DNA from: Schmidtea polychroa
Taxonomy: Eukaryota
DNA: 64,000 nt
Direction: 5' to 3'
NCBI GenBank assembly: GCA_044892525.1
Contig: CM097888.1
Coordinates: 34,162,001-34,226,000 of the forward strand
Part shown: positions 1 to 64,000 of the stretch, piece by piece
How positions within the stretch are numbered: the first letter of the stretch is position 1
Layout: every line of letters begins with the position of its first letter
Made by a program: the position numbers and the translations under genes
The notes under the pieces: model-generated
The model's input: only the letters and a program-made list of their open reading frames with translations
Told to the model about the DNA's origin: nothing
Database searches by the model: none

Positions 1-717
1 CTTAGCGGTTGAAGTAGCAATATCTAGCATTGGAATCTCCCAACTTACACTCTCATTTTCGATTAACAGTCTTTCTGATTCTTCATCCGGTTTCTGTATA
101 GGAACTATTTCTTCGACAATTTCAACAGTTTCACATTCAACTGTGCAGCAACTCAATTCAAACATCGACGACTCATCTATCACTTTCACTCCTACTGTCA
201 TTACACCGACTTCTACAGTTTCTATCATTTGATCTACTTGACTGTCTTCCATACTTATTGTATATTCACTTGAACATTCTACAATCACACTTCTGAATTC
301 TGATCCGACCTCGACTGCCTTAGAACCAACATGACTCCAACTTTCTTCAATTGATTTACATTCAAAACTGCTTTCACTATCAACTGTCTCACACATGAAC
401 TCAGTCATTGTTTCTTGGAATTTTCCTACAGCTTCATGACTTGTTAATGTATCAATGAATACAATATGCTTTTCTCCGAATGTTTCGCTTCCTACTTCAA
501 TCAATTTACTCTCTACACTACTACCGAAGTCAACTGTGTCTTTGAGTTTTTCGAAAGAAACTTCTGCAATTTCACTATCTTTCACTGATTCACTACTCAT
601 ATCTATAGCCTCTGCTTTATAGTCAGTTAACTTATTTGAAGCCTTTGTATCTTTTTCCAAGCTCGTATGTGTCAATTCGATTATTCCAGTTTCAGTTGCA
701 ATGTTTTCAGATTTGAT
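1..717 (-). CDS. Repeat exon U0 (partial, runs off window start)
   Basis: Acceptor AG at 719-718; 717 nt = 239 open codons, IKSENIATETGIIELTHTS...DIATSTAK. Confidence 0.8.
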   Translation of the reverse strand, partial: MKSENIATETGIIELTHTSLEKDTKASNKLTDYKAEAIDMSSESVKDSEIAEVSFEKLKDTVDFGSSVESKLIEVGSETFGEKHIVFIDTLTSHEAVGKFQETMTEFMCETVDSESSFECKSIEESWSHVGSKAVEVGSEFRSVIVECSSEYTISMEDSQVDQMIETVEVGVMTVGVKVIDESSMFELSCCTVECETVEIVEEIVPIQKPDEESERLLIENESVSWEIPMLDIATSTAK

Positions 718-3700
718 CTAAACACGAGAAAACATTTCTTAAAAATGTCCAAAATGTTTTGTAGTTTTTTTAAACGATAATTTATTATTATAAAATGTAA
801 TTAAAAGAAATGAATAAAAAATATGTTTAATGAAAATTTAATAAATATCATGATAAATGTATCAAACATTGCTTTAGTGCTATAAATTGTAGAAAAAAAT
901 TAATTTTATTTACCTCTATTTCACTGAAACATTCTTCCATTGTTGATTTCATTTCGTAGCCAGATTCCATGTTGTGAGTCTTTGTTTCTTCGAATTGTAT
1001 TTCAACGGTGCAATATTTAATGTCTTCATCTGATGATATGATGGTTGTTGAATAAACTGATTTTTCTGTTTCAAACATTTCGCTTTCATGCTTAATCTCT
1101 CGACACCATTCTCCACTATATTCAACATGCTCAATTACATTTTCTATGCTAATATCCTCTATTGTCGGCTTAGCGGTTGAAGTAGCAATATCTAGCATTG
1201 GAATCTCCCAACTTACACTCTCATTTTCGATTAACAGTCTTTCTGATTCTTCATCCGGTTTCTGTATAGGAACTATTTCTTCGACAATTTCAACAGTTTC
1301 ACATTCAACTGTGCAGCAACTCAATTCAAACATCGACAACTCATCTATCACTTTCACTCCTACTGTCATTACACCGACTTCTACAGTTTCTATCATTTGA
1401 TCTACTTGACTGTCTTCCATACTTATTGTATATTCACTTGAACATTCTACAATCACACTTCTGAATTCTGATCCGACCTCGACTGCCTTAGAACCAACAT
1501 GACTCCAACTTTCTTCAATTGATTTACATTCAAAACTGCTTTCACTATCAACTGTCTCACACATGAACTCAGTCATTGTTTCTTGGAATTTTCCTACAGC
1601 TTCATGACTTGTTAATGTATCAATGAATACAATATGCTTTTCTCCGAATGTTTCGCTTCCTACTTCAATCAATTTACTCTCTACACTACTACCGAAGTCA
1701 ACTGTGTCTTTGAGTTTTTCGAAAGAAACTTCTGCAATTTCACTATCTTTCACTGATTCACTACTCATATCTATAGCCTCTGCTTTATAGTCAGTTAACT
1801 TATTTGAAGCCTTTGTATCTTTTTCCAAGCTCGTATGTGTCAATTCGATTATTCCAGTTTCAGTTGCAATGTTTTCAGATTTGATCTAAACACGAGAAAA
1901 CATTTCTTAAAAATGTCCAAAATGTTTTGTAGATTTTTTAAACGATAATTTATTATTATAAAAAGTAATTAAAAGAAATGAATAAAAAATATGTTTAATG
2001 AAAATTTAATAAATATCATGATAAATGTATCAAACATTGCTTTAGTGCTATAAATTGTAGAAAAAAATTAATTTTATTTACCTCTATTTCACTGAAACAT
2101 TCTTCCATTGTTGATTTCATTTCGTAGCCAGATTCCATGTTGTGAGTCTTTGTTTCTTCGAATTGTATTTCAACGGTGCAATATTTAATGTCTTCATCTG
2201 ATGATATGATGGTTGTTGAATAAACTGATTTTTCTGTTTCAAACATTTCGCTTTCATGCTTATTCTCTCGACACCATTCTCCACTATATTCAACATGCTC
2301 AATTACATTTTCTATGCTAATATCCTCTATTGTCGGCTTAGCTGTTGAAGTAGCAATATCTAGCATTGGAATCTCCCAACTTACACTCTCATTTTCGATT
2401 AACAGTCTTTCTGATTCTTCATCCGGTTTCTGTATAGGAACTATTTCTTCGACAATTTCAACAGTTTCACATTCAACTGTGCAGCAACTCAATTCAAACA
2501 TCGACGACTCATCTATCACTTTCACTCCTACTGTCATTACACCGACTTCTACAGTTTCTATCATTTGATCTACTTGACTGTCTTCCATACTTATTGTATA
2601 TTCACTTGAACATTCTACAATCACACTTCTGAATTCTGATCCGACCTCGACTGCCTTAGAACCAACATGACTCCAACTTTCTTCAATTGATTTACATTCA
2701 AAACTGCTTTCACTATCAACTGTCTCACACATGAACTCAGTCATTGTTTCTTGGAATTTTCCTACAGCTTCATGACTTGTTAATGTATCAATGAATACAA
2801 TATGCTTTTCTCCGAATGTTTCGCTTCCTACTTCAATCAATTTACTCTCTACACTACTACCGAAGTCAACTGTGTCTTTGAGTTTTTCGAAAGAAACATC
2901 TGCAATTTCACTATCTTTCACTGATTCACTACTCATATCTATAGCCTCTGCTTTATAGTCAGTTAACTTATTTGAAGCCTTTGTATCTTTTTCCAAGCTC
3001 GTATGTGTCAATTCGATTATTCCAGTTTCAGTTGCAATGTTTTCAGATTTGATCTAAACACGAGAAAACATTTCTTAAAAATGTCCAAAATGTTTTGTAG
3101 TTTTTTTAAACGATAATTTATTATTATAAAAAGTAATTAAAAGAAATGAATAAAAAATATGTTTAATGAAAATTTAATAAATATCATGATAAATGTATCA
3201 AACATTGCTTTAGTGCTATAAATTGTAGAAAAAAATTAATTTTATTTACCTCTATTTCACTGAAACATTCTTCCATTGTTGATTTCATTTCGTAGCCAGA
3301 TTCCATGTTGTGAGTCTTTGTTTCTTCGAATTGTATTTCAACGGTGCAATATTTAATGTCTTCATCTGATGATATGATGGTTGTTGAATAAACTGATTTT
3401 TCTGTTTCAAACATTTCGCTTTCATGCTTAATCTCTCGACACCATTCTCCACTATATTCAACATGCTCAATTACATTTTCTATGCTAATATCCTCTATTG
3501 TCGGCTTAGCTGTTGAAGTAGCAATATCTAGCATTGGAATCTCCCAACTTACACTCTCATTATTGATTAACAGTCTTTCTGATTCTTCATCCGGTTTCTG
3601 TATAGGAACTATTTCTTCGACAATTTCAACAGTTTCACATTCAACTGTGCAGCAACTCAATTCAAACATCGACGACTCATCTATCACTTTCACTCCTACT

Positions 3701-6700
3701 GTCATTACATCGACTTCTACAGTTTCTATCATTTGATCTACTTGACTGTCTTCCATACTTATTGTATATTCACTTGAACATTCTACAATCACACTTCTGA
3801 ATTCTGATCCGACCTCGACTGCCTTAGAACCAACATGACTCCAACTTTCTTCAATTGATTTACATTCAAAACTGCTTTCACTATCAACTGTCTCACACAT
3901 GAACTCAGTCATTGTTTCTTGGAATTTTCCTACAGCTTCATGACTTGTTAATGTATCAATGAATACAATATGCTTTTCTCCGAATGTTTCGCTTCCTACT
4001 TCAATCAATTTACTCTCTACACTACTACCGAAGTCAACTGTGTCTTTGAGTTTTTCGAAAGAAACTTCTGCAATTTCACTATCTTTCACTGATTCACTAC
4101 TCATATCTATAGCCTCTGCTTTATAGTCAGTTAACTTATTTGAAGCCTTTGTATCTTTTTCCAAGCTCGTATGTGTCAATTCGATTATTCCAGTTTCAGT
4201 TGCAATGTTTTCAGATTTGATCTAAACACGAGAAAACATTTCTTAAAAATGTCCAAAATGTTTTGTAGTTTTTTTAAACGATAATTTATTATTATAAAAA
4301 GTAATTAAAAGAAATGAATAAAAAATATGTTTAATGAAAATTTAATAAATATCATGATAAATGTATCAAACATTGCTTTAGTGCTATAAATTGTAGAAAA
4401 AAATTAATTTTATTTACCTCTATTTCACTGAAACATTCTTCCATTGTTGATTTCATTTCGTAGCCAGATTCCATGTTGTGAGTCTTTGTTTCTTCGAATT
4501 GTATTTCAACGGTGCAATATTTAATGTCTTCATCTGATGATATGATGGTTGTTGAATAAACTGATTTTTCTGTTTCAAACATTTCGCTTTCATGCTTATT
4601 CTCTCGACACCATTCTCCACTATATTCAACATGCTCAATTACATTTTCTATGCTAATATCCTCTATTGTCGGCTTAGCTGTTGAAGTAGCAATATCTAGC
4701 ATTGGAATCTCCCAACTTACACTCTCATTTTCGATTAACAGTCTTTCTGATTCTTCATCCGGTTTCTGTATAGGAACTATTTCTTCGACAATTTCAACAG
4801 TTTCACATTCAACTGTGCAGCAACTCAATTCAAACATCGACGACTCATCTATCACTTTCACTCCTACTGTCATTACACCGACTTCTACAGTTTCTATCAT
4901 TTGATCTACTTGACTGTCTTCCATACTTATTGTATATTCACTTGAACATTCTACAATCACACTTCTGAATTCTGATCCGACCTCGACTGCCTTAGAACCA
5001 ACATGACTCCAACTTTCTTCAATTGATTTACATTCAAAACTGCTTTCACTATCAACTGTCTCACACATGAACTCAGTCATTGTTTCTTGGAATTTTCCTA
5101 CAGCTTCATGACTTGTTAATGTATCAATGAATACAATATGCTTTTCTCCGAATGTTTCGCTTCCTACTTCAATCAATTTACTCTCTACACTACTACCGAA
5201 GTCAACTGTGTCTTTGAGTTTTTCGAAAGAAACATCTGCAATTTCACTATCTTTCACTGATTCACTACTCATATCTATAGCCTCTGCTTTATAGTCAGTT
5301 AACTTATTTGAAGCCTTTGTATCTTTTTCCAAGCTCGTATGTGTCAATTCGATTATTCCAGTTTCAGTTGCAATGTTTTCAGATTTGATCTAAACACGAG
5401 AAAACATTTCTTAAAAATGTCCAAAATGTTTTGTAGTTTTTTTAAACGATAATTTATTATTATAAAAAGTAATTAAAAGAAATGAATAAAAAATATGTTT
5501 AATGAAAATTTAATAAATATCATGATAAATGTATCAAACATTGCTTTAGTGCTATAAATTGTAGAAAAAAATTAATTTTATTTACCTCTATTTCACTGAA
5601 ACATTCTTCCATTGTTGATTTCATTTCGTAGCCAGATTCCATGTTGTGAGTCTTTGTTTCTTCGAATTGTATTTCAACGGTGCAATATTTAATGTCTTCA
5701 TCTGATGATATGATGGTTGTTGAATAAACTGATTTTTCTGTTTCAAACATTTCGCTTTCATGCTTAATCTCTCGACACCATTCTCCACTATATTCAACAT
5801 GCTCAATTACATTTTCTATGCTAATATCCTCTATTGTCGGCTTAGCTGTTGAAGTAGCAATATCTAGCATTGGAATCTCCCAACTTACACTCTCATTATT
5901 GATTAACAGTCTTTCTGATTCTTCATCCGGTTTCTGTATAGGAACTATTTCTTCGACAATTTCAACAGTTTCACATTCAACTGTGCAGCAACTCAATTCA
6001 AACATCGACGACTCATCTATCACTTTCACTCCTACTGTCATTACATCGACTTCTACAGTTTCTATCATTTGATCTACTTGACTGTCTTCCATACTTATTG
6101 TATATTCACTTGAACATTCTACAATCACACTTCTGAATTCTGATCCGACCTCGACTGCCTTAGAACCAACATGACTCCAACTTTCTTCAATTGATTTACA
6201 TTCAAAACTGCTTTCACTATCAACTGTCTCACACATGAACTCAGTCATTGTTTCTTGGAATTTTCCTACAGCTTCATGACTTGTTAATGTATCAATGAAT
6301 ACAATATGCTTTTCTCCGAATGTTTCGCTTCCTACTTCAATCAATTTACTCTCTACACTACTACCGAAGTCAACTGTGTCTTTGAGTTTTTCGAAAGAAA
6401 CATCTGCAATTTCACTATCTTTCACTGATTCACTACTCATATCTATAGCCTCTGCTTTATAGTCAGTTAACTTATTTGAAGCCTTTGTATCTTTTTCCAA
6501 GCTCGTATGTGTCAATTCGATTATTCCAGTTTCAGTTGCAATGTTTTCAGATTTGATCTAAACAAGAGAAAACATTTCTTAAAAATGTCCAAAATGTTTT
6601 GTAGTTTTTTTAAACGATAATTTATTATTATAAAAAGTAATTAAAAGAAATGAATAAAAAATATGTTTAATGAAAATTTAATAAATATCATGATAAATGT

Positions 6701-9700
6701 ATCAAACATTGCTTTAGTGCTATAAATTGTAGAAAAAAATTAATTTTATTTACCTCTATTTCACTGAAACATTCTTCCATTGTTGATTTCATTTCGTAGC
6801 CAGATTCCATGTTGTGAGTCTTTGTTTCTTCGAATTGTATTTCAACGGTGCAATATTTAATGTCTTCATCTGATGATATGATGGTTGTTGAATAAACTGA
6901 TTTTTCTGTTTCAAACATTTCGCTTTCATGCTTAATCTCTCGACACCATTCTCCACTATATTCAACATGCTCAATTACATTTTCTATGCTAATATCCTCT
7001 ATTGTCGGCTTAGCTGTTGAAGTAGCAATATCTAGCATTGGAATCTCCCAACTTACACTCTCATTATTGATTAACAGTCTTTCTGATTCTTCATCCGGTT
7101 TCTGTAGAGGAACTATTTCTTCGACAATTTCAACAGTTTCACATTCAACTGTGCAGCAACTCAATTCAAACATCGACGACTCATCTATCACTTTCACTCC
7201 TACTGTCATTACATCGACTTCTACAGTTTCTATCATTTGATCTACTTGACTGTCTTCCATACTTATTGTATATTCACTTGAACATTCTACAATCACACTT
7301 CTGAATTCTGATCCGACCTCGACTGCCTTAGAACCAACATGACTCCAACTTTCTTCAATTGATTTACATTCAAAACTGCTTTCACTATCAACTGTCTCAC
7401 ACATGAACTCAGTCATTGTTTCTTGGAATTTTCCTACAGCTTCATGACTTGTTAATGTATCAATGAATACAATATGCTTTTCTCCGAATGTTTCGCTTCC
7501 TACTTCAATCAATTTACTCTCTACACTACTACCGAAGTCAACTGTGTCTTTGAGTTTTTCGAAAGAAACATCTGCAATTTCACTATCTTTCACTGATTCA
7601 CTACTCATATCTATAGCCTCTGCTTTATAGTCAGTTAACTTATTTGAAGCCTTTGTATCTTTTTCCAAGCTCGTATGTGTCAATTCGATTATTCCAGTTT
7701 CAGTTGCAATGTTTTCAGATTTGATCTAAACACGAGAAAACATTTCTTAAAAATGTCCAAAATGTTTTGTAGTTTTTTTAAACGATAATTTATTATTATA
7801 AAAAGTAATTAAAAGAAATGAATAAAAAATATGTTTAATGAAAATTTAATAAATATCATGATAAATGTATCAAACATTGCTTTAGTGCTATAAATTGTAG
7901 AAAAAAATTAATTTTATTTACCTCTATTTCACTGAAACATTCTTCCATTGTTGATTTCATTTCGTAGCCAGATTCCATGTTGCGAGTCTTTGTTTCTTCG
8001 AATTGTATTTCAACGGTGCAATATTTAATGTCTTCATCTGATGATATGATGGTTGTTGAATAAACTGATTTTTCTGTTTCAAACATTTCGCTTTCATGCT
8101 TAATCTCTCGACACCATTCTCCACTATATTCAACATGCTCAATTACATTTTCTATGCAAATATCCTCTATTGTCGGCTTAGCTGTTGAAGTAGCAATATC
8201 TAGCATTGGAATCTCCCAACTTACACTCTCATTTTCGATTAACAGTCTTTCTGATTCTTCATCCGGTTTCTGTATAGGAACTATTTCTTCGACAATTTCA
8301 ACAGTTTCACATTCAACTGTGCAGCAACTCAATTCAAACATCGACGACTCATCTATCACTTTCACTCCTACTGTCATTACACCGACTTCTACAGTTTCTA
8401 TCATTTGATCTACTTGACTGTCTTCCATACTTATTGTATATTCACTTGAACATTCTACAATCACACTTCTGAATTCTGATCCGACCTCGACTGCCTTAGG
8501 ACCAACATGACTCCAACTTTCTTCAATTGACTTACATTCAAAACTGCTTTCACTAACAACTGTCTCACACATGAACTCAGTCATTGTTTCTTGGAATTTT
8601 CCTACAGCTTCATGACTTGTTAATGTATCAATGAATACAATATGCTTTTCTCCGAATGTTTCGCTTCCTACTTCAATCAATTTACTCTCTACACTACTAC
8701 CGAAGTCAACTGTGTCTTTGAGTTTTTCGAAAGAAACATCTGCAATTTCACTATCTTTCACTGATTCACTACTCATATCTATAGCCTCTGCTTTATAGTC
8801 AGTTAACTTATTTGAAGCCTTTGTATCTTTTTCCAAGCTCGTATGTGTCAATTCGATTATTCCAGTTTCAGTTGCAATGTTTTCAGATTTGATCTAAACA
8901 CGAGAAAACATTTCTTAAAAATGTCCAAAATGTTTTGTAGTTTTTTTAAACGATAATTTATTATTATAAAAAGTAATTAAAAGAAATGAATAAAAAATAT
9001 GTTTAATGAAAATTTAATAAATATCATGATAAATGTATCAAATATTGCTTTAGTGCTATAAATTGTAGAAAAAAATTAATTTTATTTACCTCTATTTCAC
9101 TGAAACATTCTTCCATTGTTGATTTCATTTCGTAGCCAGATTCCATGTTGTGAGTCTTTGTTTCTTCGAATTGTATTTCAACGGTGCAATATTTAATGTC
9201 TTCATCTGATGATATGATGGTTGTTGAATAAACTGATTTTTCTGTTTCAAACATTTCGCTTTCATGCTTAATCTCTCGACACCATTCTCCACTATATTCA
9301 ACATGCTCAATTACATTTTCTATGCTAATATCCTCTATTGTCGGCTTAGCTGTTGAAGTAGCAATATCTAGCATTGGAATCTCCCAACTTACACTCTCAT
9401 TTTCGATTAACAGTCTTTCTGATTCTTCATCCGGTTTCTGTATAGGAACTATTTCTTCGACAATTTCAACAGTTTCACATTCAACTGTGCAGCAACTCAA
9501 TTCAAACATCGACGACTCATCTATCACTTTCACTCCTACTGTCATTACACCGACTTCTACAGTTTCTATCATTTGATCTACTTGACTGTCTTCCATACTT
9601 ATTGTATATTCACTTGAACATTCTACAATCACACTTCTGAATTCTGATCCGACCTCGACTGCCTTAGAACCAACATGACTCCAACTTTCTTCAATTGATT

Positions 9701-12700
9701 TACATTCAAAACTGCTTTCACTATCAACTGTCTCACACATGAACTCAGTCATTGTTTCTTGGAATTTTCCTACAGCTTCATGACTTGTTAATGTATCAAT
9801 GAATACAATATGCTTTTCTCCGAATGTTTCGCTTCCTACTTCAATCAATTTACTCTCTACACTACTACCGAAGTCAACTGTGTCTTTGAGTTTTTCGAAA
9901 GAAACATCTGCAATTTCACTATCTTTCACTGATTCACTACTCATATCTATAGCCTCTGCTTTATAGTCAGTTAACTTATTTGAAGCCTTTGTATCTTTTT
10001 CCAAGCTCGTATGTGTCAATTCGATTATTCCAGTTTCAGTTGCAATGTTTTCAGATTTGATCTAAACACGAGAAAACATTTCTTAAAAGTGTTCAAAATG
10101 TTTTGTATAAACGATAATTTGTTTAAACGATAATTTATCATTATAAAAAGTGATTTAAAGAAATGAATAAAAAATATGTTTAATGAAAATTTAATAAATA
10201 TCATGATAAATGAATCAAACATTGCTTTAGTGCTATAAATTGTAGGAAAAAAATTAATTTTATTTACCTCTATTTCACTGAAACATTCTTCCATTGTTGA
10301 TTTCATTTCGTAGCCAGATTCCATGTTGCGAGTCTTTGTTTCTTCGAATTGTATTTCAACTGTGCAATATTTAATGTCTTCATCTGATGATATGATGGTT
10401 GTTGAATAAACTGATTTTTCTGTTTCAAACATTTCGCTTTCATGCTTAATCTCTCGACACCATTCTCCACTATATTCAACATGCTCAATTACATTTTCTA
10501 TGCTAATATCCTCTATTGTCGGCTTAGCTGTTGAAGTAGCAATATCTAGCATTGGAATCTCCCAACTTACACTCTCATTTTCGATTAACAGTCTTTCTGA
10601 TTCTTCATCCGGTTTCTGTATAGGAACTATTTCTTCGACAATTTCAACAGTTTCACATTCAACTGTGCAGCAACTCAATTCAAACATCGACAACTCATCT
10701 ATCACTTTCACTCCTACTGTCATTACACCGACTTCTACAGTTTCTATCATTTGATCTACTTGACTGTCTTCCATACTTATTGTATATTCACTTGAACATT
10801 CTACAATCACACTTCTGAATTCTGATCCGACCTCGACTGCCTTAGAACCAACATGACTCCAACTTTCTTCAATTGACTTACATTCAAAACTGCTTTCACT
10901 ATCAACTGTCTCACACATGAACTCAGTCATTGTTTCTTGGAATTTTCCTACAGCTTCATGACTTGTTAATGTATCAATGAATACATTATGCTTTTCTCCG
11001 AATGTTTCGCTTCCTACTTCAATCAATTTACTCTCTACACTACTACCGAAGTCAACTGTGTCTTTGAGTTTTTCGAAAGAAACATCTGCAATTTCACTAT
11101 CTTTCACTGATTCACTACTCATATCTATAGCCTCTGCTTTATAGTCAGTTAACTTATTTGAAGCCTTTGTATCTTTTTCCAAGCTCGTATGTGTCAATTC
11201 GATTATTCCAGTTTCAGTTGCAATGTTTTCAGATTTGATCTAAACACGAGAAAACATTTCTTAAAAGTGTTCAAAATGTTTTGTAGATTTGTTTAAACGA
11301 TAATTTATCATTATAAAAAGTGATTTAAAGAAATGAATAAAAAATATGTTTAATGAAAATTTAATAAATATCATGATAAATGAATCAAACATTGCTTTAG
11401 TGCTATAAATTGTAGGAAAAAAATTAATTTTATTTACCTCTATTTCACTGAAACATTCTTCCATTGTTGATTTCATTTCGTAGCCAGATTCCATGTTGCG
11501 AGTCTTTGTTTCTTCGAATTGTATTTCAACTGTGCAATATTTAATGTCTTCATCTGATGATATGATGGTTGTTGAATAAACTGATTTTTCTGTTTCAAAC
11601 ATTTCGCTTTCATGCTTAATCTCTCGACACCATTCTCCACTATATTCAACATGCTCAATTACATTTTCTATGCTAATATCCTCTATTGTCGGCTTAGCTG
11701 TTGAAGTAGCAATATCTAGCATTGGAATCTCCCAACTTACACTCTCATTTTCGATTAACAGTCTTTCTGATTCTTCATCCGGTTTCTGTATAGGAACTAT
11801 TTCTTCGACAATTTCAACAGTTTCACATTCAACTGTGCAGCAACTCAATTCAAACATCGACGACTTATCTATCACTTTCACTCCTACTGTCATTACACCG
11901 ACTTCTACAGTTTCTATCATTTGATCTACTTGACTGTCTTCCATACTTATTGTATATTCACTTGAACATTCTACAATCACACTTCTGAATTCTGATCCGA
12001 CCTCGACTGCCTTAGAACCAACATGACTCAAGCTTTCTTCTATTGATATACATTCAAAACTGCTTTCACTATCAACTATCTCACACATGAACTCAGTCAT
12101 TGTTTCTTGGAATTTTCCTACAGCTTCATGACTTGTTAGAGTATCAATGAATACAATATCCTTTTCTCCGAATGTTTCGCTTCCTACTTCAATCAATTTA
12201 CTCTCTACACTACTACCGAAGTCAACTGTGTCTTTTACTTTTTCGAAAGAAACATCTACAATTTCACTATCTTTCACTGATTCACTACTCATATCTATAG
12301 CCTCTGCTTTATAGTCAGTTAACTTATTTGAAGCCTTTGTATCTTTTTCCAAGCTCGTATGTGTCAATTCGATTATTCCAGTTTCAGTTGCAATGTTTTC
12401 AGATTTGATCTAAACACGAGAAAACATTTCTTAAAAGTGTTCAAAATGTTTTGTAGATTTGTTTAAACGATAATTTATCATTATAAAAAGTGATTTAAAG
12501 AAATGAATAAAAAATATGTTTAATGAAAATTTAATAAATATCATGATAAATGAATCAAACATTGCTTTAGTGCTATAAATTGTAGGAAAAAAATTAATTT
12601 TATTTACCTCTATTTCACTGAAACATTCTTCCATTGTTGATTTCATTTCGTAGCCAGATTCCATGTTGCGAGTCTTTGTTTCTTCGAATTGTATTTCAAC

Positions 12701-15700
12701 TGTGCAATATTTAATGTCTTCATCTGATGATATGATGGTTGTTGAATAAACTGATTTTTCTGTTTCAAACATTTCGCTTTCATGCTTAATCTCTCGACAC
12801 CATTCTCCACTATATTCAACATGCTCAATTACATTTTCTATGCTAATATCCTCTATTGTCGGCTTAGCGGTTGAAGTAGCAATATCTAGCATTGGAATCT
12901 CCCAACTTACACTCTCATTTTCGATTAACAGTCTTTCTGATTCTTCATCCGGTTTCTGTATAGGAACTATTTCTTCGACAATTTCAACAGTTTCACATTC
13001 AACTGTGCAGCAACTCAATTCAAACATCGACGACTTATCTATCACTTTCACTCCTACTGTCATTACACCGACTTCTACAGTTTCTATCATTTGATCTACT
13101 TGACTGTCTTCCATACTTATTGTATATTCACTTGAACATTCTACAATCACACTTCTGAATTCTGATCCGACCTCGACTGCCTTAGAACCAACATGACTCA
13201 AGCTTTCTTCTATTGATATACATTCAAAACTGCTTTCACTATCAACTATCTCACACATGAACTCAGTCATTGTTTCTTGGAATTTTCCTACAGCTTCATG
13301 ACTTGTTAGAGTATCAATGAATACAATATCCTTTTCTCCGAATGTTTCGCTTCCTACTTCAATCAATTTACTCTCTACACTACTACCGAAGTCAACTGTG
13401 TCTTTTAGTTTTTCGAAAGAAACATCTGCAATTTCACTATCTTTCACTGATTCACTACTCATATCTATAGCCTCTGCTTTATAGTCAGTTAACTTATTTG
13501 AAGCCTTTGTATCTTTTTCCAAGCTCGTATGTGTCAATTCGATTATTCCAGTTTCAGTTGCAATGTTTTCAGATTTGATCTAAACACGAGAAAACATTTC
13601 TTTAAAGTGTTCAAAATGTTTTGTAGATTTGTTTAAACGATAATTTATCATTATAAAAAGTGATTTAAAGAAATGAATAAAAAATATGTTTAATGAAAAT
13701 TTAATAAATATCATGAAAAATGAATCAAACATTGCTTTAGTGCTATAAATTGTAGGAAAAAAATTAATTTTATTTACCTCTATTTCACTGAAACATTCTT
13801 CCATTGTTGATTTCATTTCGTAGCCAGATTCCATGTTGCGAGTCTTTGTTTCTTCGAATTGTATTTCAACTGTGCAATATTTAATGTCTTCATCTGATGA
13901 TATGATGGTTGTTGAATAAACTGATTTTTCTGTTTCAAACATTTCGCTTTCATGCTTAATCTCTCGACACCATTCTCCACTATATTCAACATGCTCAATT
14001 ACATTTTCTATGCTAATATCCTCTATTGTCGGCTTAGCTGTTGAAGTAGCAATATCTAGCATTGGAATCTCCCAACTTACACTCTCATTTTCGATTAACA
14101 GTCTTTCTGATTCTTCATCCGGTTTCTGTATAGGAACTATTTCTTCGACAATTTCAACAGTTTCACATTCAACTGTGCAGCAACTCAATTCAAACATCGA
14201 CGACTTATCTATCACTTTCACTCCTACTGTCATTACACCGACTTCTACAGTTTCTATCATTTGATCTACTTGACTGTCTTCCATACTTATTGTATATTCA
14301 CTTGAACATTCTACAATCACACTTCTGAATTCTGATCCGACCTCGACTGCCTTAGAACCAACATGACTCAAGCTTTCTTCTATTGATATACATTCAAAAC
14401 TGCTTTCACTATCAACTATCTCACACATGAACTCAGTCATTGTTTCTTGGAATTTTCCTACAGCTTCATGACTTGTTAGAGTATCAATGAATACAATATC
14501 CTTTTCTCCGAATGTTTCGCTTCCTACTTCAATCAATTTACTCTCTACACTACTACCGAAGTCAACTGTGTCTTTTACTTTTTCGAAAGAAACATCTACA
14601 ATTTCACTATCTTTCACTGATTCACTACTCATATCTATAGCCTCTGCTTTATAGTCAGTTAACTTATTTGAAGCCTTTGTATCTTTTTCCAAGCTCGTAT
14701 GTGTCAATTCGATTATTCCAGTTTCAGTTGCAATGTTTTCAGATTTGATCTAAACACGAGAAAACATTTCTTAAAAGTGTTCAAAATGTTTTGTAGATTT
14801 GTTTAAACGATAATTTATCATTATAAAAAGTGATTTAAAGAAATGAATAAAAAATATGTTTAATGAAAATTTAATAAATATCATGATAAATGAATCAAAC
14901 ATTGCTTTAGTGCTATAAATTGTAGGAAAAAAATTAATTTTATTTACCTCTATTTCACTGAAACATTCTTCCATTGTTGATTTCATTTCGTAGCCAGATT
15001 CCATGTTGCGAGTCTTTGTTTCTTCGAATTGTATTTCAACTGTGCAATATTTAATGTCTTCATCTGATGATATGATGGTTGTTGAATAAACTGATTTTTC
15101 TGTTTCAAACATTTCGCTTTCATGCTTAATCTCTCGACACCATTCTCCACTATATTCAACATGCTCAATTACATTTTCTATGCTAATATCCTCTATTGTC
15201 GGCTTAGCGGTTGAAGTAGCAATATCTAGCATTGGAATCTCCCAACTTACACTCTCATTTTCGATTAACAGTCTTTCTGATTCTTCATCCGGTTTCTGTA
15301 TAGGAACTATTTCTTCGACAATTTCAACAGTTTCACATTCAACTGTGCAGCAACTCAATTCAAACATCGACGACTTATCTATCACTTTCACTCCTACTGT
15401 CATTACACCGACTTCTACAGTTTCTATCATTTGATCTACTTGACTGTCTTCCATACTTATTGTATATTCACTTGAACATTCTACAATCACACTTCTGAAT
15501 TCTGATCCGACCTCGACTGCCTTAGAACCAACATGACTCAAGCTTTCTTCTATTGATATACATTCAAAACTGCTTTCACTATCAACTATCTCACACATGA
15601 ACTCAGTCATTGTTTCTTGGAATTTTCCTACAGCTTCATGACTTGTTAGAGTATCAATGAATACAATATCCTTTTCTCCGAATGTTTCGCTTCCTACTTC

Positions 15701-45700: not shown

Positions 45701-48700
45701 AACTATTTCTTCGACAATTTCAACAGTTTCACATTCAACTGTGCAGCAACTCAATTCAAACATCGACGACTCATCTATCACTTTCACTCCTACTGTCATT
45801 ACACCGACTTCTACAGTTTCTATCATTTGATCTACTTGACTGTCTTCCATACTTATTGTATATTCACTTGAACATTCTACAATCACACTTCTGAATTCTG
45901 ATCCGACCTCGACTGCCTTAGAACCAACATGACTCAAGCTTTCTTCTATTGATTTACATTCAAAACTGCTTTCACTATCAACTGTCTCACACATGAACTC
46001 AGTCATTGTTTCTTGGAATTTTCCTACAGCTTCATGACTTGTTAGTGTATCAATGAATACAATATGCTTTTCTCCGAATGTTTCGCTTCCTACTTCAATC
46101 AATTTACTCTCTACACTACTACCGAAGTCAACTGTGTCTTTTAGTTTTTCGAAAGAAACATCTACAATTTCACTGTCTTTCACTGATTCACTACTCATAT
46201 CTATAGCCTCTGCTTTATAGTCAGTTAACTTATTTGAAGCCTTTGTATCTTTTTCCAAGCTCGTATGTGTCAATTCGATTATTCCAGTTTCAGTTGCAAT
46301 GTTTTCAGATTTGATCTAAACACGAGAAAACATTTCTTAAAAATGTCCAAAATGTTTTGTAGTTTTTTTAAACGATAATTTATTATTATAAAATGTAATT
46401 AAAAGAAATGAATAAAAAATATGTGTAATGAAAATTTAATAAATATCATGATAAATGTATCAAACATTGCTTTAGTGCTATAAATTGTAGGAAAAAAATT
46501 AATTTTATTTACCTCTATTTCACTGAAACATTCTTCCATTGTTGATTTCATTTCGTGGCCAGATTCCATGTTGCGAGTCTTTGTTTCTTCGAATTGTATT
46601 TCAACTGTGCAATATTTAATGTCTTCATCTGATGATATGATGGTTGTTGAATAAACTGATTTTTCTGTTTCAAACATTTCGCTTTCATGCTTAATCTCTC
46701 GACACCATTCTCCACTATATTCAACATGCTCAATTACATTTTCTATGCTAATATCCTCTATTGTCGGCTTAGCTGTTGAAGTAGCAATATCTAGCATTGG
46801 AATCTCCCAACTTACACTCTCATTTTCGATTAATAGTCTTTCTGACTCTTCATCCGATTTCTGTATAGGAACTATTTCTTCGACAATTTCAACAGTTTCA
46901 CATTCAACTGTGCAGCAACTCAAATCAAACATCGACGACTCATCTATCACATTTACTCCTACTGTCATTACACCGACTTCTACAGTTTCTATCATTTGAT
47001 CTACTTGACTGTCTTCCATACTTATTGTATATTCACTTGAACATTCTACAATCACACTTCTGAATTCTGATCCGACCTCGACTGCCTTAGAACCAACATG
47101 ACTCAAGCTTTCTTCTATTGATTTACATTCAAAACTGCTTTCACTATCAACTGTCTCACACATGAACTCAGTCATTGTTTCTTGGCATTTTCCTACAGCT
47201 TCATGACTTGTTAGTGTATCAATGAATACAATATGCTTTTCTCCGAATGTTTCGCTTCCTACTTCAATCAATTTACTCTCTACACTACTACCGAAGTCAA
47301 CTGTGTCTTTTAGTTTTTCGAAAGAAACCTCTACAATTTCACTATCTTTCACTGATTCACTACTCATATCTATAGCCTCTGCTTTATAGTCAGTTAACTT
47401 ATTTGAAGCCTTTGTATCTTTTTCCAAGCTCGTATGTGTCAATTCGATTATTCCAGTTTCAGTTGCAATGTTTTCAGATTTGATCTAAACACGAGAAAAC
47501 ATTTCTTAAAAATGTCCAAAATGTTTTGTAGTTTTTTTAAACGTTAATTTATTATTATAAAAAGTAATTAAAAGAAATGAATAAAAAATATGTTTAATGA
47601 AAATTTAATAAATATCATGATAAATGTATCAAACATTGCTTTAGTGCTATAAATTGTAGGAAAAAAATTAATTTTATTTACCTCTATTTCACTGAAACAT
47701 TCTTCCATTGTTGATTTCATTTCGTAGCCAGATTCCATGTTGCGAGTCTTTGTTTCTTCGAATTGTATTTCAACGGTGCAATATTTAATGTCTTCATCTG
47801 ATGATATGATGGTTGTTGAATAAACTGATTTTTCTGTTTCAAACATTTCGCTTTCATGCTTAATCTCTCGACACCATTCTCCACTATATTCAACATGCTC
47901 AATTACATTTTCTATGCTAATATCCTCTATTGTCGGCTTAGCTGTTGAAGTAGCAATATCTAGCATTGGAATCTCCCAACTTACACTCTCATTTTCGATT
48001 AGTAGTCTTTCTGACTCTTCATCCGATTTCTGTATAGGAACTATTTCTTCGACAATTTCAACAGTTTCACATTCAACTGTGCAGCAACTCAAATCAAACA
48101 TCGACGACTCATCTATCACATTTACTCCTACTGTCATTACACCGACTTCTACAGTTTCTATCATTTGATCTACTTGACTGTCTTCCATACTTATTGTATA
48201 TTCACTTGAACATTCTACAATCACACTTCTGAATTCTGATCCGACCTCGACTGCCTTAGAACCAACATGACTCAAGCTTTCTTCTATTGATTTACATTCA
48301 AAACTGCTTTCATTATCAACTGTCTCACACATGAACTCAGTCATTGTTTCTTGGAATTTTCCTACAGCTTCATGACTTGTTAGTGTATCAATGAATACAA
48401 TATGCTTTTCTCCGAATGTTTCGCTTCCTACTTCAATCAATTTACTCTCTACACTACTACCGAAGTCAACTGTGTCTTTTAGTTTTTCGAAAGAAACATC
48501 TACAATTTCACTGTCTTTCACTGATTCACTACTCATATCTATAGCCTCTGCTTTATAGTCAGTTAACTTATTTGAAGCCTTTGTATCTTTTTCCAAGCTC
48601 GTATGTGTCAATTCGATTATTCCAGTTTCAGTTGCAATGTTTTCAGATTTGATCTAAACACAAGAAAACATTTCTTAAAAATGTCCAAAATGTTTTGTAG

Positions 48701-60700: not shown

Positions 60701-63700
60701 AACATTTCGCTTTCATGCTTAATCTCTCGACACCATTCTCCACTATATTCAACATGCTCAATTACATTTTCTATGCTAATATCCTCTATTGTCGGCTTAG
60801 CTGTTGAAGTAGCAATATCTAGCATTGGAATCTCCCAACTTACACTCTCATTTTCGATTAACAGTCTTTCTGATTCTTCATCCGGTTTCTGTATAGGAAC
60901 TATTTCTTCGACAATTTCAACAGTTTCACATTCAACTGTGCAGCAACTCAATTCAAACATCGACGACTCATCTATCACTTTCACTCCTACTGTCATTACA
61001 CCGACTTCTACAGTTTCTATCATTTGATCTACTTGACTGTCTTCCATACTTATTGTATATTCACTTGAACATTCTACAATCACACTTCTGAATTCTGATC
61101 CGACCTCGACTGCCTTAGAACCAACATGACTCAAGCTTTCTTCTATTGATTTACATTCAAAACTGCTTTCACTATCAACTGTCTCACACATGAACTCAGT
61201 CATTGTTTCTTGGAATTTTCCTACAGCTTCATGACTTGTTAGTGTATCAATGAATACAATATGCTTTTCTCCGAATGTTTCGCTTCCTACTTCAATCAAT
61301 TTACTCTCTACACTACTACCGAAGTCAACTGTGTCTTTTAGTTTTTCGAAAGAAACCTCTACAATTTCATTATCTTTCACTGATTCACTACTCATATCTA
61401 TAGCCTCTGCTTTATAGTCAGTTAACTTATTTGAAGCCTTTGTATCTTTTTCCAAGCTCGTATGTGTCAATTCGATTATTCCAGTTTCAGTTGCAATGTT
61501 TTCAGATTTGATCTAAACACGAGAAAACATTTCTTAAAAATGTCCAAAATGTTTTGTAGTTTTTTTAAACGATAATTTATTATTATAAAAAGTAATTAAA
61601 AGAAATGAATAAAAAATATGTTTAATGAAAATTTAATAAATATCATGATAAATGTATCAAACATTGCTTTAGTGCTATAAATTGTAGGAAAAAAATTAAT
61701 TTTATTTACCTCTATTTCACTGAAACATTCTTCCATTGTTGATTTCATTTCGTAGCCAGATTCCATGTTGCGAGTCTTTGTTTCTTCGAATTGTATTTCA
61801 ACTGTGCAATATTTAATGTCTTCATCTGATGATATGATGGTTGTTGAATAAACTGATTTTTCTGTTTCAAACATTTCGCTTTCATGCTTAATCTCTCGAC
61901 ACCATTCTCCACTATATTCAACATGCTCAATTACATTTTCTATGCTAATATCCTCTATTGTCGGCTTAGCTGTTGAAGTAGCAATATCTAGCATTGGAAT
62001 CTCCCAACTTACACTCTCATTTTCGATTAACAGTCTTTCTGATTCTTCATCCGGTTTCTGTATAGGAACTATTTCTTCGACAATTTCAACAGTTTCACAT
62101 TCAACTGTGCAGCAACTCAATTCAAACATCGACGACTCATCTATCACTTTCACTCCTACTGTCATTACACCGACTTCTACAGTTTCTATCATTTGATCTA
62201 CTTGACTGTCTTCCATACTTATTGTATATTCACTTGAACATTCTACAATCACACTTCTGAATTCTGATCCGACCTCGACTGCCTTAGAACCAACATGACT
62301 CAAGCTTTCTTCTATTGATTTACATTCAAAACTGCTTTCACTATCAACTGTCTCACACATGAACTCAGTCATTGTTTCTTGGAATTTTCCTACAGCTTCA
62401 TGACTTGTTAGTGTATCAATGAATACAATATGCTTTTCTCCGAATGTTTCGCTTCCTACTTCAATCAATTTACTCTCTACACTACTACCGAAGTCAACTG
62501 TGTCTTTTAGTTTTTCGAAAGAAACCTCTACAATTTCATTATCTTTCACTGATTCACTACTCATATCTATAGCCTCTGCTTTATAGTCAGTTAACTTATT
62601 TGAAGCCTTTGTATCTTTTTCCAAGCTCGTATGTGTCAATTCGATTATTCCAGTTTCAGTTGCAATGTTTTCAGATTTGATCTAAACACGAGAAAACATT
62701 TCTTAAAAATGTCCAAAATGTTTTGTAGTTTTTTTAAACGATAATTTATTATTATAAAAAGTAATTAAAAGAAATGAATAAAAAATATGTTTAATGAAAA
62801 TTTAATAAATATCATGATAAATGTATCAAACATTGCTTTAGTGCTATAAATTGTAGGAAAAAAATTAATTTTATTTACCTCTATTTCACTGAAACATTCT
62901 TCCATTGTTGATTTCATTTCGTAGCCAGATTCCATGTTGCGAGTCTTTGTTTCTTCGAATTGTATTTCAACGGTGCAATATTTAATGTCTTCATCTGATG
63001 ATATGATGGTTGTTGAATAAACTGATTTTTCTGTTTCAAACATTTCGTTTTCATGCTTAATCTCTCGACACCATTCTCCACTATATTCAACATGCTCAAT
63101 TACATTTTCTATGCTAATATCCTCTATTGTCGGCTTAGCTGTTGAAGTAGCAATATCTAGCATTGGAATCTCCCAACTTACACTCTCATTTTCGATTAAT
63201 AGTCTTTCTGACTCTTCATCCGATTTCTGTATAGGAACTATTTCTTCGACAATTTCAACAGTTTCACATTCAACTGTGCAGCAACTCAAATCAAACATCG
63301 ACGACTCATCTATCACATTTACTCCTACTGTCATTACACCGACTTCTACAGTTTCTATCATTTGATCTACTTGACTGTCTTCCATACTTATTGTATATTC
63401 ACTTGAACATTCTACAATCACACTTCTGAATTCTGATCCGACCTCGACTGCCTTAGAACCAACATGACTCAAGCTTTCTTCTATTGATTTACATTCAAAA
63501 CTGCTTTCACTATCAACTGTCTCACACATGAACTCAGTCATTGTTTCTTGGAATTTTCCTACAGCTTCATGACTTGTTAGTGTATCAATGAATACAATAT
63601 GCTTTTCTCCGAATGTTTCGCTTCCTACTTCAATCAATTTACTCTCTACACTACTACCGAAGTCAACTGTGTCTTTTAGTTTTTCGAAAGAAACATCTAC

Positions 63701-63850
63701 AATTTCACTGTCTTTCACTGATTCACTACTCATATCTATAGCCTCTGCTTTATAGTCAGTTAACTTATTTGAAGCCTTTGTATCTTTTTCCAAGCTCGTA
63801 TGTGTCAATTCGATTATTCCAGTTTCAGTTGCAATGTTTTCAGATTTGAT
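1..63850 (-). CDS. Internal part of one giant multi-exon gene: 54 full 972-nt exons + 1 partial, encoding tandem 324-aa acidic E/S/T/V/I-rich repeats (17,735 codons in window; family not recognised)
   Basis: Minus-strand acceptor TGTTTTCTCGTGTTTAG|ATC AAA TCT GAA and donor GAA ATA GAG|GTAAAT recur in every unit. Joining them gives in-frame ...CFSEIE|IKSENIATETGIIELTHTSLEK... No exonic stop or frameshift seen; all length variation is intronic. Confidence 0.85.
718..913 (-). other. GT-AG intron, A-type, 196 nt (representative of 8 introns: 718, 1886, 3054, 4222, 5390, 6558, 7726, 8894)
   Basis: Minus strand begins GTAAATAAAATT at 913 and ends TGTTTTCTCGTGTTTAG at 718; much more AT-rich than the exon; contains in-frame stops. 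Confidence 0.85.
914..1885 (-). CDS. Repeat exon U1 (block A)
   Basis: 972 nt, AG|ATC...GAG|GT, phase 0/0; markers AEV, W113, DELS. Confidence 0.85.
2082..3053 (-). CDS. Repeat exon U2 (block A)
   Basis: 972 nt, phase 0/0; markers ADV, RENK. Confidence 0.85.
3250..4221 (-). CDS. Repeat exon U3 (block A)
   Basis: 972 nt, phase 0/0; markers AEV, VEVDV, LINNE. Confidence 0.85.
4418..5389 (-). CDS. Repeat exon U4 (block A)
   Basis: 972 nt, phase 0/0; same protein as U2 (RENK). Confidence 0.85.
5586..6557 (-). CDS. Repeat exon U5 (block A)
   Basis: 972 nt, phase 0/0; ADV, VEVDV, LINNE. Confidence 0.85.
6754..7725 (-). CDS. Repeat exon U6 (block A)
   Basis: 972 nt, phase 0/0; VEVDV, VPLQ, LINNE. 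Confidence 0.85.
7922..8893 (-). CDS. Repeat exon U7 (block A)
   Basis: 972 nt, phase 0/0; TVVS, VGPK, DICIE, TRN. Confidence 0.85.
9090..10061 (-). CDS. Repeat exon U8 (block A)
   Basis: 972 nt, phase 0/0; ADV, THN. Confidence 0.85.
10062..10267 (-). other. GT-AG intron, unique 206-nt B-type variant with 13-bp direct repeat
   Basis: Same splice signals; taaacgataattt at 10108-10120 and 10124-10136. Confidence 0.85.
10268..11239 (-). CDS. Repeat exon U9 (A/B mosaic)
   Basis: 972 nt, phase 0/0; A-type W113/ADV with TRN, flanked by B-type introns. Confidence 0.85.
11240..11437 (-). other. GT-AG intron, B-type, 198 nt (representative of 6 introns: 11240, 12410, 13580, 14750, 15920, 17090)
   Basis: Same splice signals; diagnostic aaaagtgttc, gtagatttgttt, tatca, gtgattt, tgaatc (plus strand). 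Confidence 0.85.
11438..12409 (-). CDS. Repeat exon U10 (block B)
   Basis: 972 nt, phase 0/0; VDV, KVK, EKD, CEIVD, CISIE, DKSS. Confidence 0.85.
12608..13579 (-). CDS. Repeat exon U11 (block B)
   Basis: 972 nt, phase 0/0; ADV, KLK, B markers. Confidence 0.85.
13778..14749 (-). CDS. Repeat exon U12 (block B)
   Basis: 972 nt, phase 0/0; as U10. Confidence 0.85.
14948..15919 (-). CDS. Repeat exon U13 (block B)
   Basis: 972 nt, phase 0/0; as U11. Confidence 0.85.
16118..17089 (-). CDS. Repeat exon U14 (block B)
   Basis: 972 nt, phase 0/0; VDV, KLK; N>K in the fifth exon codon (17075). Confidence 0.85.
17288..18259 (-). CDS. Repeat exon U15 (block B edge)
   Basis: 972 nt, phase 0/0; DESS, TFISS, RNVES. 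Confidence 0.85.
18260..18456 (-). other. GT-AG intron, C-type, 197 nt (representative of all introns from U15/U16 to U53/U54)
   Basis: Same splice signals; differs from A-type mainly by one extra G (gtaggaaaaaaa). Confidence 0.85.
18457..19428 (-). CDS. Repeat exon U16 (block C)
   Basis: 972 nt, phase 0/0; VEV, ETIE. Confidence 0.85.
19626..20597 (-). CDS. Repeat exon U17 (B/C chimera)
   Basis: 972 nt, phase 0/0; B-type EKD/CEIVD/CISIE with C-type QKSDE. Confidence 0.85.
20795..21766 (-). CDS. Repeat exon U18 (block C)
   Basis: 972 nt, phase 0/0; as U16. Confidence 0.85.
21964..22935 (-). CDS. Repeat exon U19 (block C)
   Basis: 972 nt, phase 0/0; VEFGV, QKSDE. Confidence 0.85.
23133..24104 (-). 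CDS. Repeat exon U20 (block C)
   Basis: 972 nt, phase 0/0; TFDF, DELS, FDL; GIIE>GIIK. Confidence 0.85.
24302..25273 (-). CDS. Repeat exon U21 (block C)
   Basis: 972 nt, phase 0/0; IEIG, VNV, FDL, QKS; GIIE>GIIK. Confidence 0.85.
25471..26442 (-). CDS. Repeat exon U22 (block C)
   Basis: 972 nt, phase 0/0; VDV, QKP. Confidence 0.85.
26640..27611 (-). CDS. Repeat exon U23 (block C)
   Basis: 972 nt, phase 0/0; VEV, DNES, QKP. Confidence 0.85.
27809..28780 (-). CDS. Repeat exon U24 (block C)
   Basis: 972 nt, phase 0/0; VDV, DNES, VNV, FDL, QKS. Confidence 0.85.
28978..29949 (-). CDS. Repeat exon U25 (block C)
   Basis: 972 nt, phase 0/0; as U23. Confidence 0.85.
30147..31118 (-). CDS. Repeat exon U26 (block C)
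   Basis: 972 nt, phase 0/0; FGCS, IEIG. Confidence 0.85.
31316..32287 (-). CDS. Repeat exon U27 (block C)
   Basis: 972 nt, phase 0/0; KDN, VNV, QKS, QFK, SGHE, SAIE. Confidence 0.85.
32485..33456 (-). CDS. Repeat exon U28 (block C)
   Basis: 972 nt, phase 0/0; KDN, VNV, QKP. Confidence 0.85.
33654..34625 (-). CDS. Repeat exon U29 (block C)
   Basis: 972 nt, phase 0/0; IEIG, VNV, QKS, HENE. Confidence 0.85.
34823..35794 (-). CDS. Repeat exon U30 (block C)
   Basis: 972 nt, phase 0/0; KDN, VNV, QKS, SGHE. Confidence 0.85.
35992..36963 (-). CDS. Repeat exon U31 (block C)
   Basis: 972 nt, phase 0/0; VDV, VNV, QKS, HENE. Confidence 0.85.
37161..38132 (-). CDS. Repeat exon U32 (block C)
   Basis: 972 nt, phase 0/0; KDN, VNV, QKP. 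Confidence 0.85.
38330..39301 (-). CDS. Repeat exon U33 (block C)
   Basis: 972 nt, phase 0/0; as U31. Confidence 0.85.
39499..40470 (-). CDS. Repeat exon U34 (block C)
   Basis: 972 nt, phase 0/0; VEV, VKV, QKP. Confidence 0.85.
40668..41639 (-). CDS. Repeat exon U35 (block C)
   Basis: 972 nt, phase 0/0; KDN, IEIG, TSK. Confidence 0.85.
41837..42808 (-). CDS. Repeat exon U36 (block C)
   Basis: 972 nt, phase 0/0; TSK, YCPV. Confidence 0.85.
43006..43977 (-). CDS. Repeat exon U37 (block C)
   Basis: 972 nt, phase 0/0; KDN, QKP. Confidence 0.85.
44175..45146 (-). CDS. Repeat exon U38 (block C)
   Basis: 972 nt, phase 0/0; as U36. Confidence 0.85.
45344..46315 (-). CDS. Repeat exon U39 (block C)
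   Basis: 972 nt, phase 0/0; VDV, QKP. Confidence 0.85.
46513..47484 (-). CDS. Repeat exon U40 (block C)
   Basis: 972 nt, phase 0/0; GKCQ, VNV, QKS, SGHE. Confidence 0.85.
47682..48653 (-). CDS. Repeat exon U41 (block C)
   Basis: 972 nt, phase 0/0; as U24. Confidence 0.85.
48851..49822 (-). CDS. Repeat exon U42 (block C)
   Basis: 972 nt, phase 0/0; KDN, QKP. Confidence 0.85.
50020..50991 (-). CDS. Repeat exon U43 (block C)
   Basis: 972 nt, phase 0/0; IEIG, TSK, YCPV. Confidence 0.85.
51189..52160 (-). CDS. Repeat exon U44 (block C)
   Basis: 972 nt, phase 0/0; VNV, QKS, ISRE, SGHE. Confidence 0.85.
52358..53329 (-). CDS. Repeat exon U45 (block C)
   Basis: 972 nt, phase 0/0; as U24/U41. 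Confidence 0.85.
53527..54498 (-). CDS. Repeat exon U46 (block C)
   Basis: 972 nt, phase 0/0; VEV, VKV, QKP. Confidence 0.85.
54696..55667 (-). CDS. Repeat exon U47 (block C)
   Basis: 972 nt, phase 0/0; as U45. Confidence 0.85.
55865..56836 (-). CDS. Repeat exon U48 (block C)
   Basis: 972 nt, phase 0/0; as U46. Confidence 0.85.
57034..58005 (-). CDS. Repeat exon U49 (block C)
   Basis: 972 nt, phase 0/0; as U45. Confidence 0.85.
58203..59174 (-). CDS. Repeat exon U50 (block C)
   Basis: 972 nt, phase 0/0; VDV, IEIG, QKP. Confidence 0.85.
59372..60343 (-). CDS. Repeat exon U51 (block C)
   Basis: 972 nt, phase 0/0; KDN, VNV, FEL, QKS, SGHE. Confidence 0.85.
60541..61512 (-). CDS. Repeat exon U52 (block C)
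   Basis: 972 nt, phase 0/0; KDN, QKP. Confidence 0.85.
61710..62681 (-). CDS. Repeat exon U53 (block C)
   Basis: 972 nt, phase 0/0; as U52. Confidence 0.85.
62879..63850 (-). CDS. Repeat exon U54 (block C)
   Basis: 972 nt, phase 0/0; VDV, VNV, QKS, HENE. Confidence 0.85.
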
Positions 63851-64000
63851 CTAAACACAAGAAAACATTTCTTAAAAATGTCCAAAATGTTTTGTAGTTT
63901 TTTTAAACGATAATTTATTATTATAAATGTAATTAAAAGAAATGAATAAAAAATATGTGTAATGAAAATTTAATAAATATCATGATAAATGTATCAAACA
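63851..64000 (-). other. Partial intron upstream of U54 (runs off window end)
   Basis: Acceptor AG at 63852-63851; C-type with a private 1-bp deletion (ttataaatgt vs ttataaaatgt near 63925). Confidence 0.8.

Follow-up and report, generated by a model that had tools for sequence, protein, structure and literature searches.

A minus-strand array of exons that are joined in RNA

The stretch of the Schmidtea polychroa genome analyzed here, 64,000 nt of contig CM097888.1 that we refer to as the window, is filled from end to end by a tandem array on the minus strand. The repeated module consists of a 972-nt exon and an intron of ~197 nt, and the exons encode near-identical units of 324 residues. 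The window has a guanine plus cytosine (GC) content of 32%, a GC skew that is negative throughout, and 0 undetermined bases (N). The array, with a period of 1169 bp (range 1168–1178), comprises 54 complete and two partial units inside the 64 kb. On the minus strand, the word GAGGTAAAT occurs 54 times and the word TTTAGATC 55 times, with a spacing of 1168–1178 nt that is 1169 nt in 39 units. When run on the window with default settings, a tandem-repeat finder missed this long period.

Each exon is bordered by the acceptor TTTAG|ATC and the donor GAG|GTAAAT. In 54 of 54 complete units the acceptor-to-donor segment measures 972 nt and contains 0 stop codons. The exons have a GC content of 35% and the spacers, which are 196 nt (n = 7), 197 nt (n = 39), 198 nt (n = 6), or 206 nt (n = 1) long, one of 17%. 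Read in frame, the array gives 54 × 324 + 239 = 17,735 open codons, with neither a start nor a stop within the window. A mechanical list of open reading frames (ORFs) has one 347-residue TTG ORF per unit, which starts 14 codons past the acceptor and extends 37 codons into the spacer, its codon 310 being the final exon codon. An earlier note on this DNA had placed the donor directly after that codon and the acceptor 14 codons before the TTG; both positions are confirmed, and the junction words quoted there are present. Its in-frame exons of 972 nt throughout and its 17,735 continuous codons were recovered as well, and the layout supports its description of the window as the middle of a protein of at least ~2 MDa with at least 55 units of 324 residues, of which ~2.0 MDa lie in the window.

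The coding frame has 0 stops; the other sense frames have 39 and 43, and the antisense frames 7–17. Shuffling the exons 5000 times gave a mean of 27.8 stops and never fewer than 13, and the probability of 324 codons without a stop, estimated from base composition, is ~3e-13. Chance is excluded as an explanation of the open frame of the exon. Because the segment at 63851–64000 corresponds to the 3′ part of an array-type intron, the array extends at least one module 5′ of the window.

Four public runs were aligned to a 1101-nt stretch across one spacer, a length below one period that avoids self-repeats. In the RNA-type runs X1 and X3, one contig each joins window position 45344 straight to 45146, skipping 197 nt. 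The skipped segment has CT..AC ends on the plus strand, equivalent to GT..AG when read on the minus strand. Word depth in the spacer and the exons is 0 versus 551 in X1 and 0 versus ~4500–5900 in X3, these depths being sums over at least 55 collapsed copies that cannot be normalized. The only contig of X1 is 1002 nt long (972 + 30), the length characteristic of a 972-nt cycle that closes on itself at k = 31, and a joint that "goes back 1101" with "68 letters between" corresponds to 68 nt of exon outside the 1101-nt stretch. In the DNA-like run X15, the spacer is covered at 430x with no joint, and word depth on the unit is 430–1380. The predicted junction is therefore present in RNA and absent from DNA, and the GT..AG borders on the minus strand identify this strand as the transcribed one. 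These results show that the introns are removed and the exons joined in RNA. Detection of such a junction was a check that the earlier note had named beforehand, and it succeeded in X1 and X3, on the minus strand. The tryptic peptide predicted to span the junction is STMEECFSEIEIK. An estimate by which several percent of the RNA-run data would come from this transcript was rejected, as the "million letters" in question are contig size, not read count.

Relatives of the unit and the exit from the array

When used as a query, the consensus unit retrieved 10 proteins with 35–71% identity, all of them unnamed and encoded on contigs of ~1.2–2.6 kb. HMMER, run exhaustively against 1.84 billion representatives, added four relatives, and an alignment/profile-based protein search one more (P0017). 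The family totals ~17 relatives, none of which is named, and a metagenome scan for further loci returned one locus, previously known. The contigs of eight metagenome relatives were taken for a comparison of exons and introns. Their stop-free exons measure 969, 969, 969, 972, 975, 975, 978, and 978 nt, all multiples of three, and are bordered by YAG|AT... and by ...|GTAA or |GTAT. In six of these contigs the start and end overlap exactly, by 22–141 nt (at least 55 nt in four), so that the contigs close on themselves and represent collapsed tandem arrays. The implied array periods are ~1192–1315 nt, apart from one of 1818 nt and a 2499-nt cycle of two units. The splice positions show up in the protein alignment as well, since the ORF calls of the relatives run into "EVNF...", which is translated GTAAAT(T), and begin in "FHSIQ|I...", which is a translated polypyrimidine tract followed by CAG.

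The introns of the relatives are 197–849 nt long and align no better than shuffled sequence. Between the window and its closest relative, L007, exons share 81% nucleotide identity, whereas introns share 64%, versus 62% after shuffling. In L002, adjacent exons are 90–95% identical and adjacent introns ~70%, versus 63% in shuffles. Across the family, exon size appears to be fixed and intron size free. In the most distant relative, L003 (1446–1959 and 1–476), the intron is 849 nt long with 21% GC, and the exon is still 969 nt. The ratio of nonsynonymous to synonymous substitution rates (dN/dS or ω; Nei-Gojobori, unsaturated pairs) is 0.25 for the window versus L007, 0.21 for L009 versus L011, and 0.15 for L002 versus L010. 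As judged from these comparisons, the units are members of a small family that is unnamed, lineage-restricted (orphan), and under purifying selection. One relative, P0008 (55% identity), is encoded by an AT-rich animal exon fragment (L001:1–800) that abuts GC-rich bacterial genes (L001:800–4966), including Wzy_C and polysaccharide deacetylase. A bacterial context for P0008 was rejected, L001 being a chimeric metagenome scaffold, and the apparent bacterial setting of the family is an assembly artefact.

One public protein extends beyond the repeat. P0011 (UniParc UPI000600EB6D) has 1003 residues, starts at a unit-internal Met, and carries the predicted junction ...ECFSEIE|IKSENIATE..., followed by a full unit 90–91% identical to the window consensus. 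After the last unit come 539 unique residues (P0011:465–1003), which are acidic and Ser/Thr-rich. This tail matches nothing in Pfam, does not resemble the 324-residue unit, has no homologue but itself among 5.8 billion proteins, and retrieves only sub-threshold acidic, disordered look-alikes from the ESM Atlas. The 1.4 units of P0011 differ from each other by 1 residue and from the window units by ~10%. P0011 would represent either a sister taxon with its own homogenized variant or diverged 3′-terminal units of the window locus, and under both readings the array would be followed, across a normal splice junction, by unique coding sequence. The library of 1.84 billion representatives contained no larger protein with the 324-residue repeat, and the giant gene therefore appears to be unannotated; public protein sets hold only the 1003-residue fragment and unnamed single-unit pieces.

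Variation among units and properties of the 324-residue repeat

The 54 exons represent 38 distinct sequences, with a largest pairwise difference of 24/972 nt, and 43 of the 54 full units are distinct. The units fall into three ordered blocks (u0–u36, u37–u44, and u45–u53) that are distinguished by different marker substitutions, and toward the 3′ end the introns go from 197 to 198 nt (from u39) and then to 196 nt. The sole 206-nt intron owes its extra length to a short internal duplication and sits at the boundary between the second and third blocks. Coordinates of these features are listed below.

Features of the array within the window (units numbered from the 5′ end of the minus strand)
Feature	Position (nt)	Strand	Remarks
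Interior of the tandem exon–intron array	1–64000	−	54 complete exons, 1 partial exon, 1 partial intron; both array ends lie outside the window
Partial array-type intron, 3′ part, ends TTTAG	63851–64000	−	First 150 nt of the reverse complement, compared with array introns
Exon u0, first complete 972-nt exon, 5′-most	62879–63850	−	Acceptor/donor words
Exon u15, translation equals the 324-residue consensus	45344–46315	−	Query in all protein searches
Intron u15/u16, 197 nt, 17% GC, GTAAAT...TTTAG	45147–45343	−	Removed in RNA contigs
Exon u16	44175–45146	−	Joined to u15 in RNA contigs
Exon u53, last complete exon	914–1885	−	Acceptor/donor words
Partial exon, first 239 codons (717 nt), cut by window start	1–717	−	Array goes on 3′ of the window
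Unit block u0–u36 (5′ variant group)	20795–63850	−	Mean difference 7.8 nt per 972-nt exon; runs of alternating unit types
Unit block u37–u44	11438–20597	−	Markers H84D, T111I, K121I; introns 198 nt from u39 on
Unit block u45–u53	914–11239	−	Markers V51A, L127W, R304H in most; introns 196 nt
Sole 206-nt intron	10062–10267	−	Short internal duplication, 16-nt period, 2.2 copies at 10102–10136

Identical exons are found in 10 pairs at lag 2 versus one pair at lag 1, an excess that points to a two-unit higher-order repeat. Two-unit periodicity is seen at 20795–63850 and 11438–17089 of the window, and also in L002, with its 2499-nt two-unit cycle. Duplication or conversion in dimer steps seems to have occurred in more than one species. 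Diversity is 0.0109 in exons versus 0.0106 in introns, and from this variant pattern we infer that the uniformity of the array reflects concerted evolution of whole modules. The distinct codon variants comprise 19 synonymous and 41 nonsynonymous changes (ω ~0.5), and purifying selection is apparently visible mainly in the comparison between species.

A single unit has a predicted mass of 36.5 kDa, an isoelectric point of 4.2, and a net charge of about −52, with the negative charge evenly spread along its length. It contains 60 Glu, 17 Asp, 21 Lys, 4 Arg, 43 Ser, 30 Ile, 30 Val, 28 Thr, 9 Cys, and 4 Pro. Pfam gave no match for the unit or for any of 16 family members, including no titin-type immunoglobulin (Ig), Fn3, or kinase domain, and no plakin domain, spectrin repeat, or plectin repeat was matched by Pfam in the unit or the P0011 tail. 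The proportion of Pro (4/324, 1.2%) does not fit PEVK. The remarks in the earlier note that the repeat is not PEVK and shows no Ig, Fn3, or spectrin signature agree with the blank Pfam result. A profile search of PDB sequences with the family returned nothing, as did Rfam on two units, both strands. AlphaFold gave no confident fold with alignments of 11 and 16 sequences (predicted local distance difference test scores of 32 and 31), its models consisting of low-confidence beta hairpins and no helices. The ESM Atlas queried with the unit returned acidic disordered look-alikes only, below the lead threshold (scores of 0.74 or less). The repeat, described in the earlier note as one that could not be recognized, likewise receives no identity from Pfam, the PDB profile search, or AlphaFold.

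In the family alignment, 20 columns are invariant and 29 nearly so; W260 is invariant and C195 nearly invariant, and unit length stays within 323–326 residues. Fixed length, conserved columns, and low ω (0.15–0.25) together suggest a defined structure or a defined spacing, as opposed to simple disorder. S-x-E motifs number 13 versus 8.0 expected (P = 0.04), the region of any signal peptide lying outside the window, and the alternation of hydrophobic and polar residues is mildly enriched (P ~0.04–0.05). There is one N-x-S/T site per unit and no furin-type RxxR site at the unit borders; processing as a furin-type polyprotein was rejected on the latter ground. Self-comparison of the family with hhalign suggested three cryptic sub-repeats of ~100–108 residues (probabilities 31–61%, composition bias being possible), with a motif resembling [IV][ED]x[SG]SE[FYW] (hydrophobic-acidic-SSE-aromatic) at unit residues ~37–58, 133–153, and 241–261. 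This pattern hints weakly that the unit may be composed of three cryptic sub-repeats.

A probable giant gene and its alternatives

Iterated exon–intron modules are known from silk genes (Nephila Flag, Argiope MaSp2), where neighboring introns resemble one another as closely as neighboring exons do, a likeness interpreted as a sign of intragenic recombination and concerted evolution (PMC1885213). Like them, the array has the form of a large structural gene of repeated modules whose exons and introns are about equally diverse, and it shares with the Flag-type architecture exons that are near-identical and in frame (at most 24 nt apart), near-identical introns, and removal of these introns in RNA. 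Unlike them, it shows no sequence relation to silk, its unit is rich in Glu, Ser, Ile, Val, and Thr and not in Gly/Ala/Pro motifs, the unit is fixed at 324 residues with almost no length variation, and there are no spidroin terminal domains within the window. Flag has 13 exons, and the window alone has 54 modules, far more. With titin/connectin, the array shares the scale (~2 MDa in the window), the many symmetric exons, and a plausible role as spring or ruler. In contrast to titin, whose domains have diverged, its units are >97% identical to one another, lack Ig, Fn3, and kinase domains as assessed by Pfam, and are not of PEVK type. Titin-scale means over 30,000 residues, and the window alone holds 17,735 codons.

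Kringle IV-2 of LPA and the super-repeats of nebulin are exon–intron cassettes duplicated in frame, in which copy number sets protein length; they have known folds (kringle and actin-binding simple repeats, respectively), at least two exons each, and tens of copies at most. The cassette described here differs in consisting of one exon, encoding an unrecognized unit, and occurring in at least 55 copies. Plakins and spectraplakins are also giant repeat-built proteins of the cytoskeleton, but none of the plakin, spectrin, and plectin-repeat models fits the unit. The nearest look-alikes according to language models are FSCB, the MELT region of KNL1, and fibronectin-binding repeats (scores of at most 0.74, below lead level), and these show no homology. 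Unlike acidic disordered repeats, the unit has a length held within 3 codons, 20 invariant columns, and ω of 0.15–0.25. By sequence, the array cannot be placed in any of these groups. Literature searches found no description of a gene with this 324-residue repeat. The architecture is known, the domain family is new, and the copy number and uniformity are extreme.

Very probably, the window belongs to one minus-strand gene of iterated phase-0 exons that is spliced, translated, and under selection. Its module, a 972-nt phase-0/phase-0 exon plus an intron of ~197 nt with 17% GC, is duplicated in tandem. Introns are cut out at GAG|GTAAAT...TTTAG|ATC; with all exons joined in frame, the ORF would run on unbroken for at least 17,735 codons (~2.0 MDa), and its translation would yield a string of 55 or more near-identical acidic units of 324 residues. 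Unequal exchange or conversion, proceeding by one or two units at a time, would homogenize introns as much as exons, and between species only the exons, exon length modulo 3, and splice signals are kept. The repeat region might serve as a long polyanionic structural element (a spacer, spring, or ruler), with the number of units dictating its length, and would probably form part of a giant cytoskeletal linker, a role that we put forward tentatively and rate somewhat below an even chance. A more extensive version has an array of at least 126 kb with ~107 units, one ~105-kb messenger RNA (mRNA), and a ~35,000-residue (~3.9 MDa) polypeptide with a plakin-type N-terminal part that acts as a length-tunable cytoskeletal spring or ruler; taken as a whole, it is rather unlikely.

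Several points weigh against a single giant spliced gene. The library types of runs X1, X3, and X15 are guesses ("RNA?"). The RNA contigs are short-read assemblies in which all units are collapsed, so that the number of units per molecule cannot be read from them; donor-to-acceptor joining by itself does not distinguish forward splicing from back-splicing, and no single mRNA molecule carrying all units was observed. Within the array, ω of ~0.5 is only weakly below 1. The start, stop, promoter, and signal peptide lie outside the window. As to function, the searches turned up neither a fold nor a domain nor a relative with a name, and any role is conjectural.

The earlier note had proposed one spliced gene in place of a satellite or a cluster of 54 genes, and the evidence upholds it. 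A non-coding satellite or 54 separate small genes would account for the one 347-residue TTG ORF per unit in the ORF track and for the near-identical, satellite-like period of 1169 bp. Either is hardly credible given that the spacer is spliced out of RNA, that the frame is open over both exon borders with the exon starting 14 codons before the TTG, that exon length is a multiple of three in eight relatives in which introns drift, that dN/dS is 0.15–0.25, and that P0011 joins units. It is also quite improbable, in our view, that the length of the array is an assembly artefact and the true unit number fewer or different. Long near-identical arrays are easily mis-assembled, the short-read assemblies of the relatives collapse to one or two units, and the older public model has 1.4 units only. 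On the other hand, the 38 distinct exons and 43 distinct full units, with their three ordered blocks, two-unit pattern, and block-specific intron lengths, form a structured variation of the kind expected of a resolved long-read assembly and not of artificial expansion, which argues against an artefact, and the word depth of DNA run X15 on the unit is very high (430–1380).

Two further alternatives accept a spliced gene. In one, the mature products are smaller or variable owing to exon skipping, internal promoters, or poly(A) sites, and 17,735 codons overstates their size. The RNA data, which consist of unit-to-unit joining in collapsed contigs with no many-unit molecule observed, are compatible with this, and any exon could be skipped without loss of frame. 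However, no contig branches to sequence resembling an untranslated region or poly(A) at comparable depth, X1 yielded a single closed-cycle contig, unit beginnings have no conserved start codon, and no unit has a stop. The upkeep of at least 54 open, splice-competent units under selection would also be hard to explain if few were used, and we regard smaller or variable products as improbable. The main functional rival keeps the gene structure and assigns it to a secreted structural or matrix protein, such as an adhesive, an egg or capsule coat, or a mineral-binding acidic phosphoprotein. Extreme acidity, the 9 Cys per unit with C195 nearly invariant, the mild excess of S-x-E (13 versus 8.0 expected, P = 0.04), and a high absolute RNA word depth favor secretion, and iterated exon–intron modules are best known in secreted silk genes (PMC1885213). 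Yet no signal peptide is in view, the N terminus being outside the window, unit borders have no furin-type sites, each unit has a single N-x-S/T, and the RNA depth sums at least 55 collapsed copies and cannot be normalized. Secretion is a serious but unlikely candidate.

With a single spliced giant gene as the preferred reading, a locus that could be masked as a repeat, or split by ORF callers into 54 "genes", is a transcribed, spliced, and constrained gene, and the encoded protein is among the largest predictable from any animal genome. It offers a case model for concerted evolution, in which exons and introns are homogenized together within a genome and exons but not introns are kept between species. 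Further giant genes may hide in apparent satellites of long-read assemblies. If the reading of ~35,000 residues and ~3.9 MDa is true, the protein would be at or above the size of titin and would represent a new class of giant spring or ruler in a non-vertebrate animal. The copy number of the units could tune the physical length of a 2–4 MDa chain of identical, highly acidic units.

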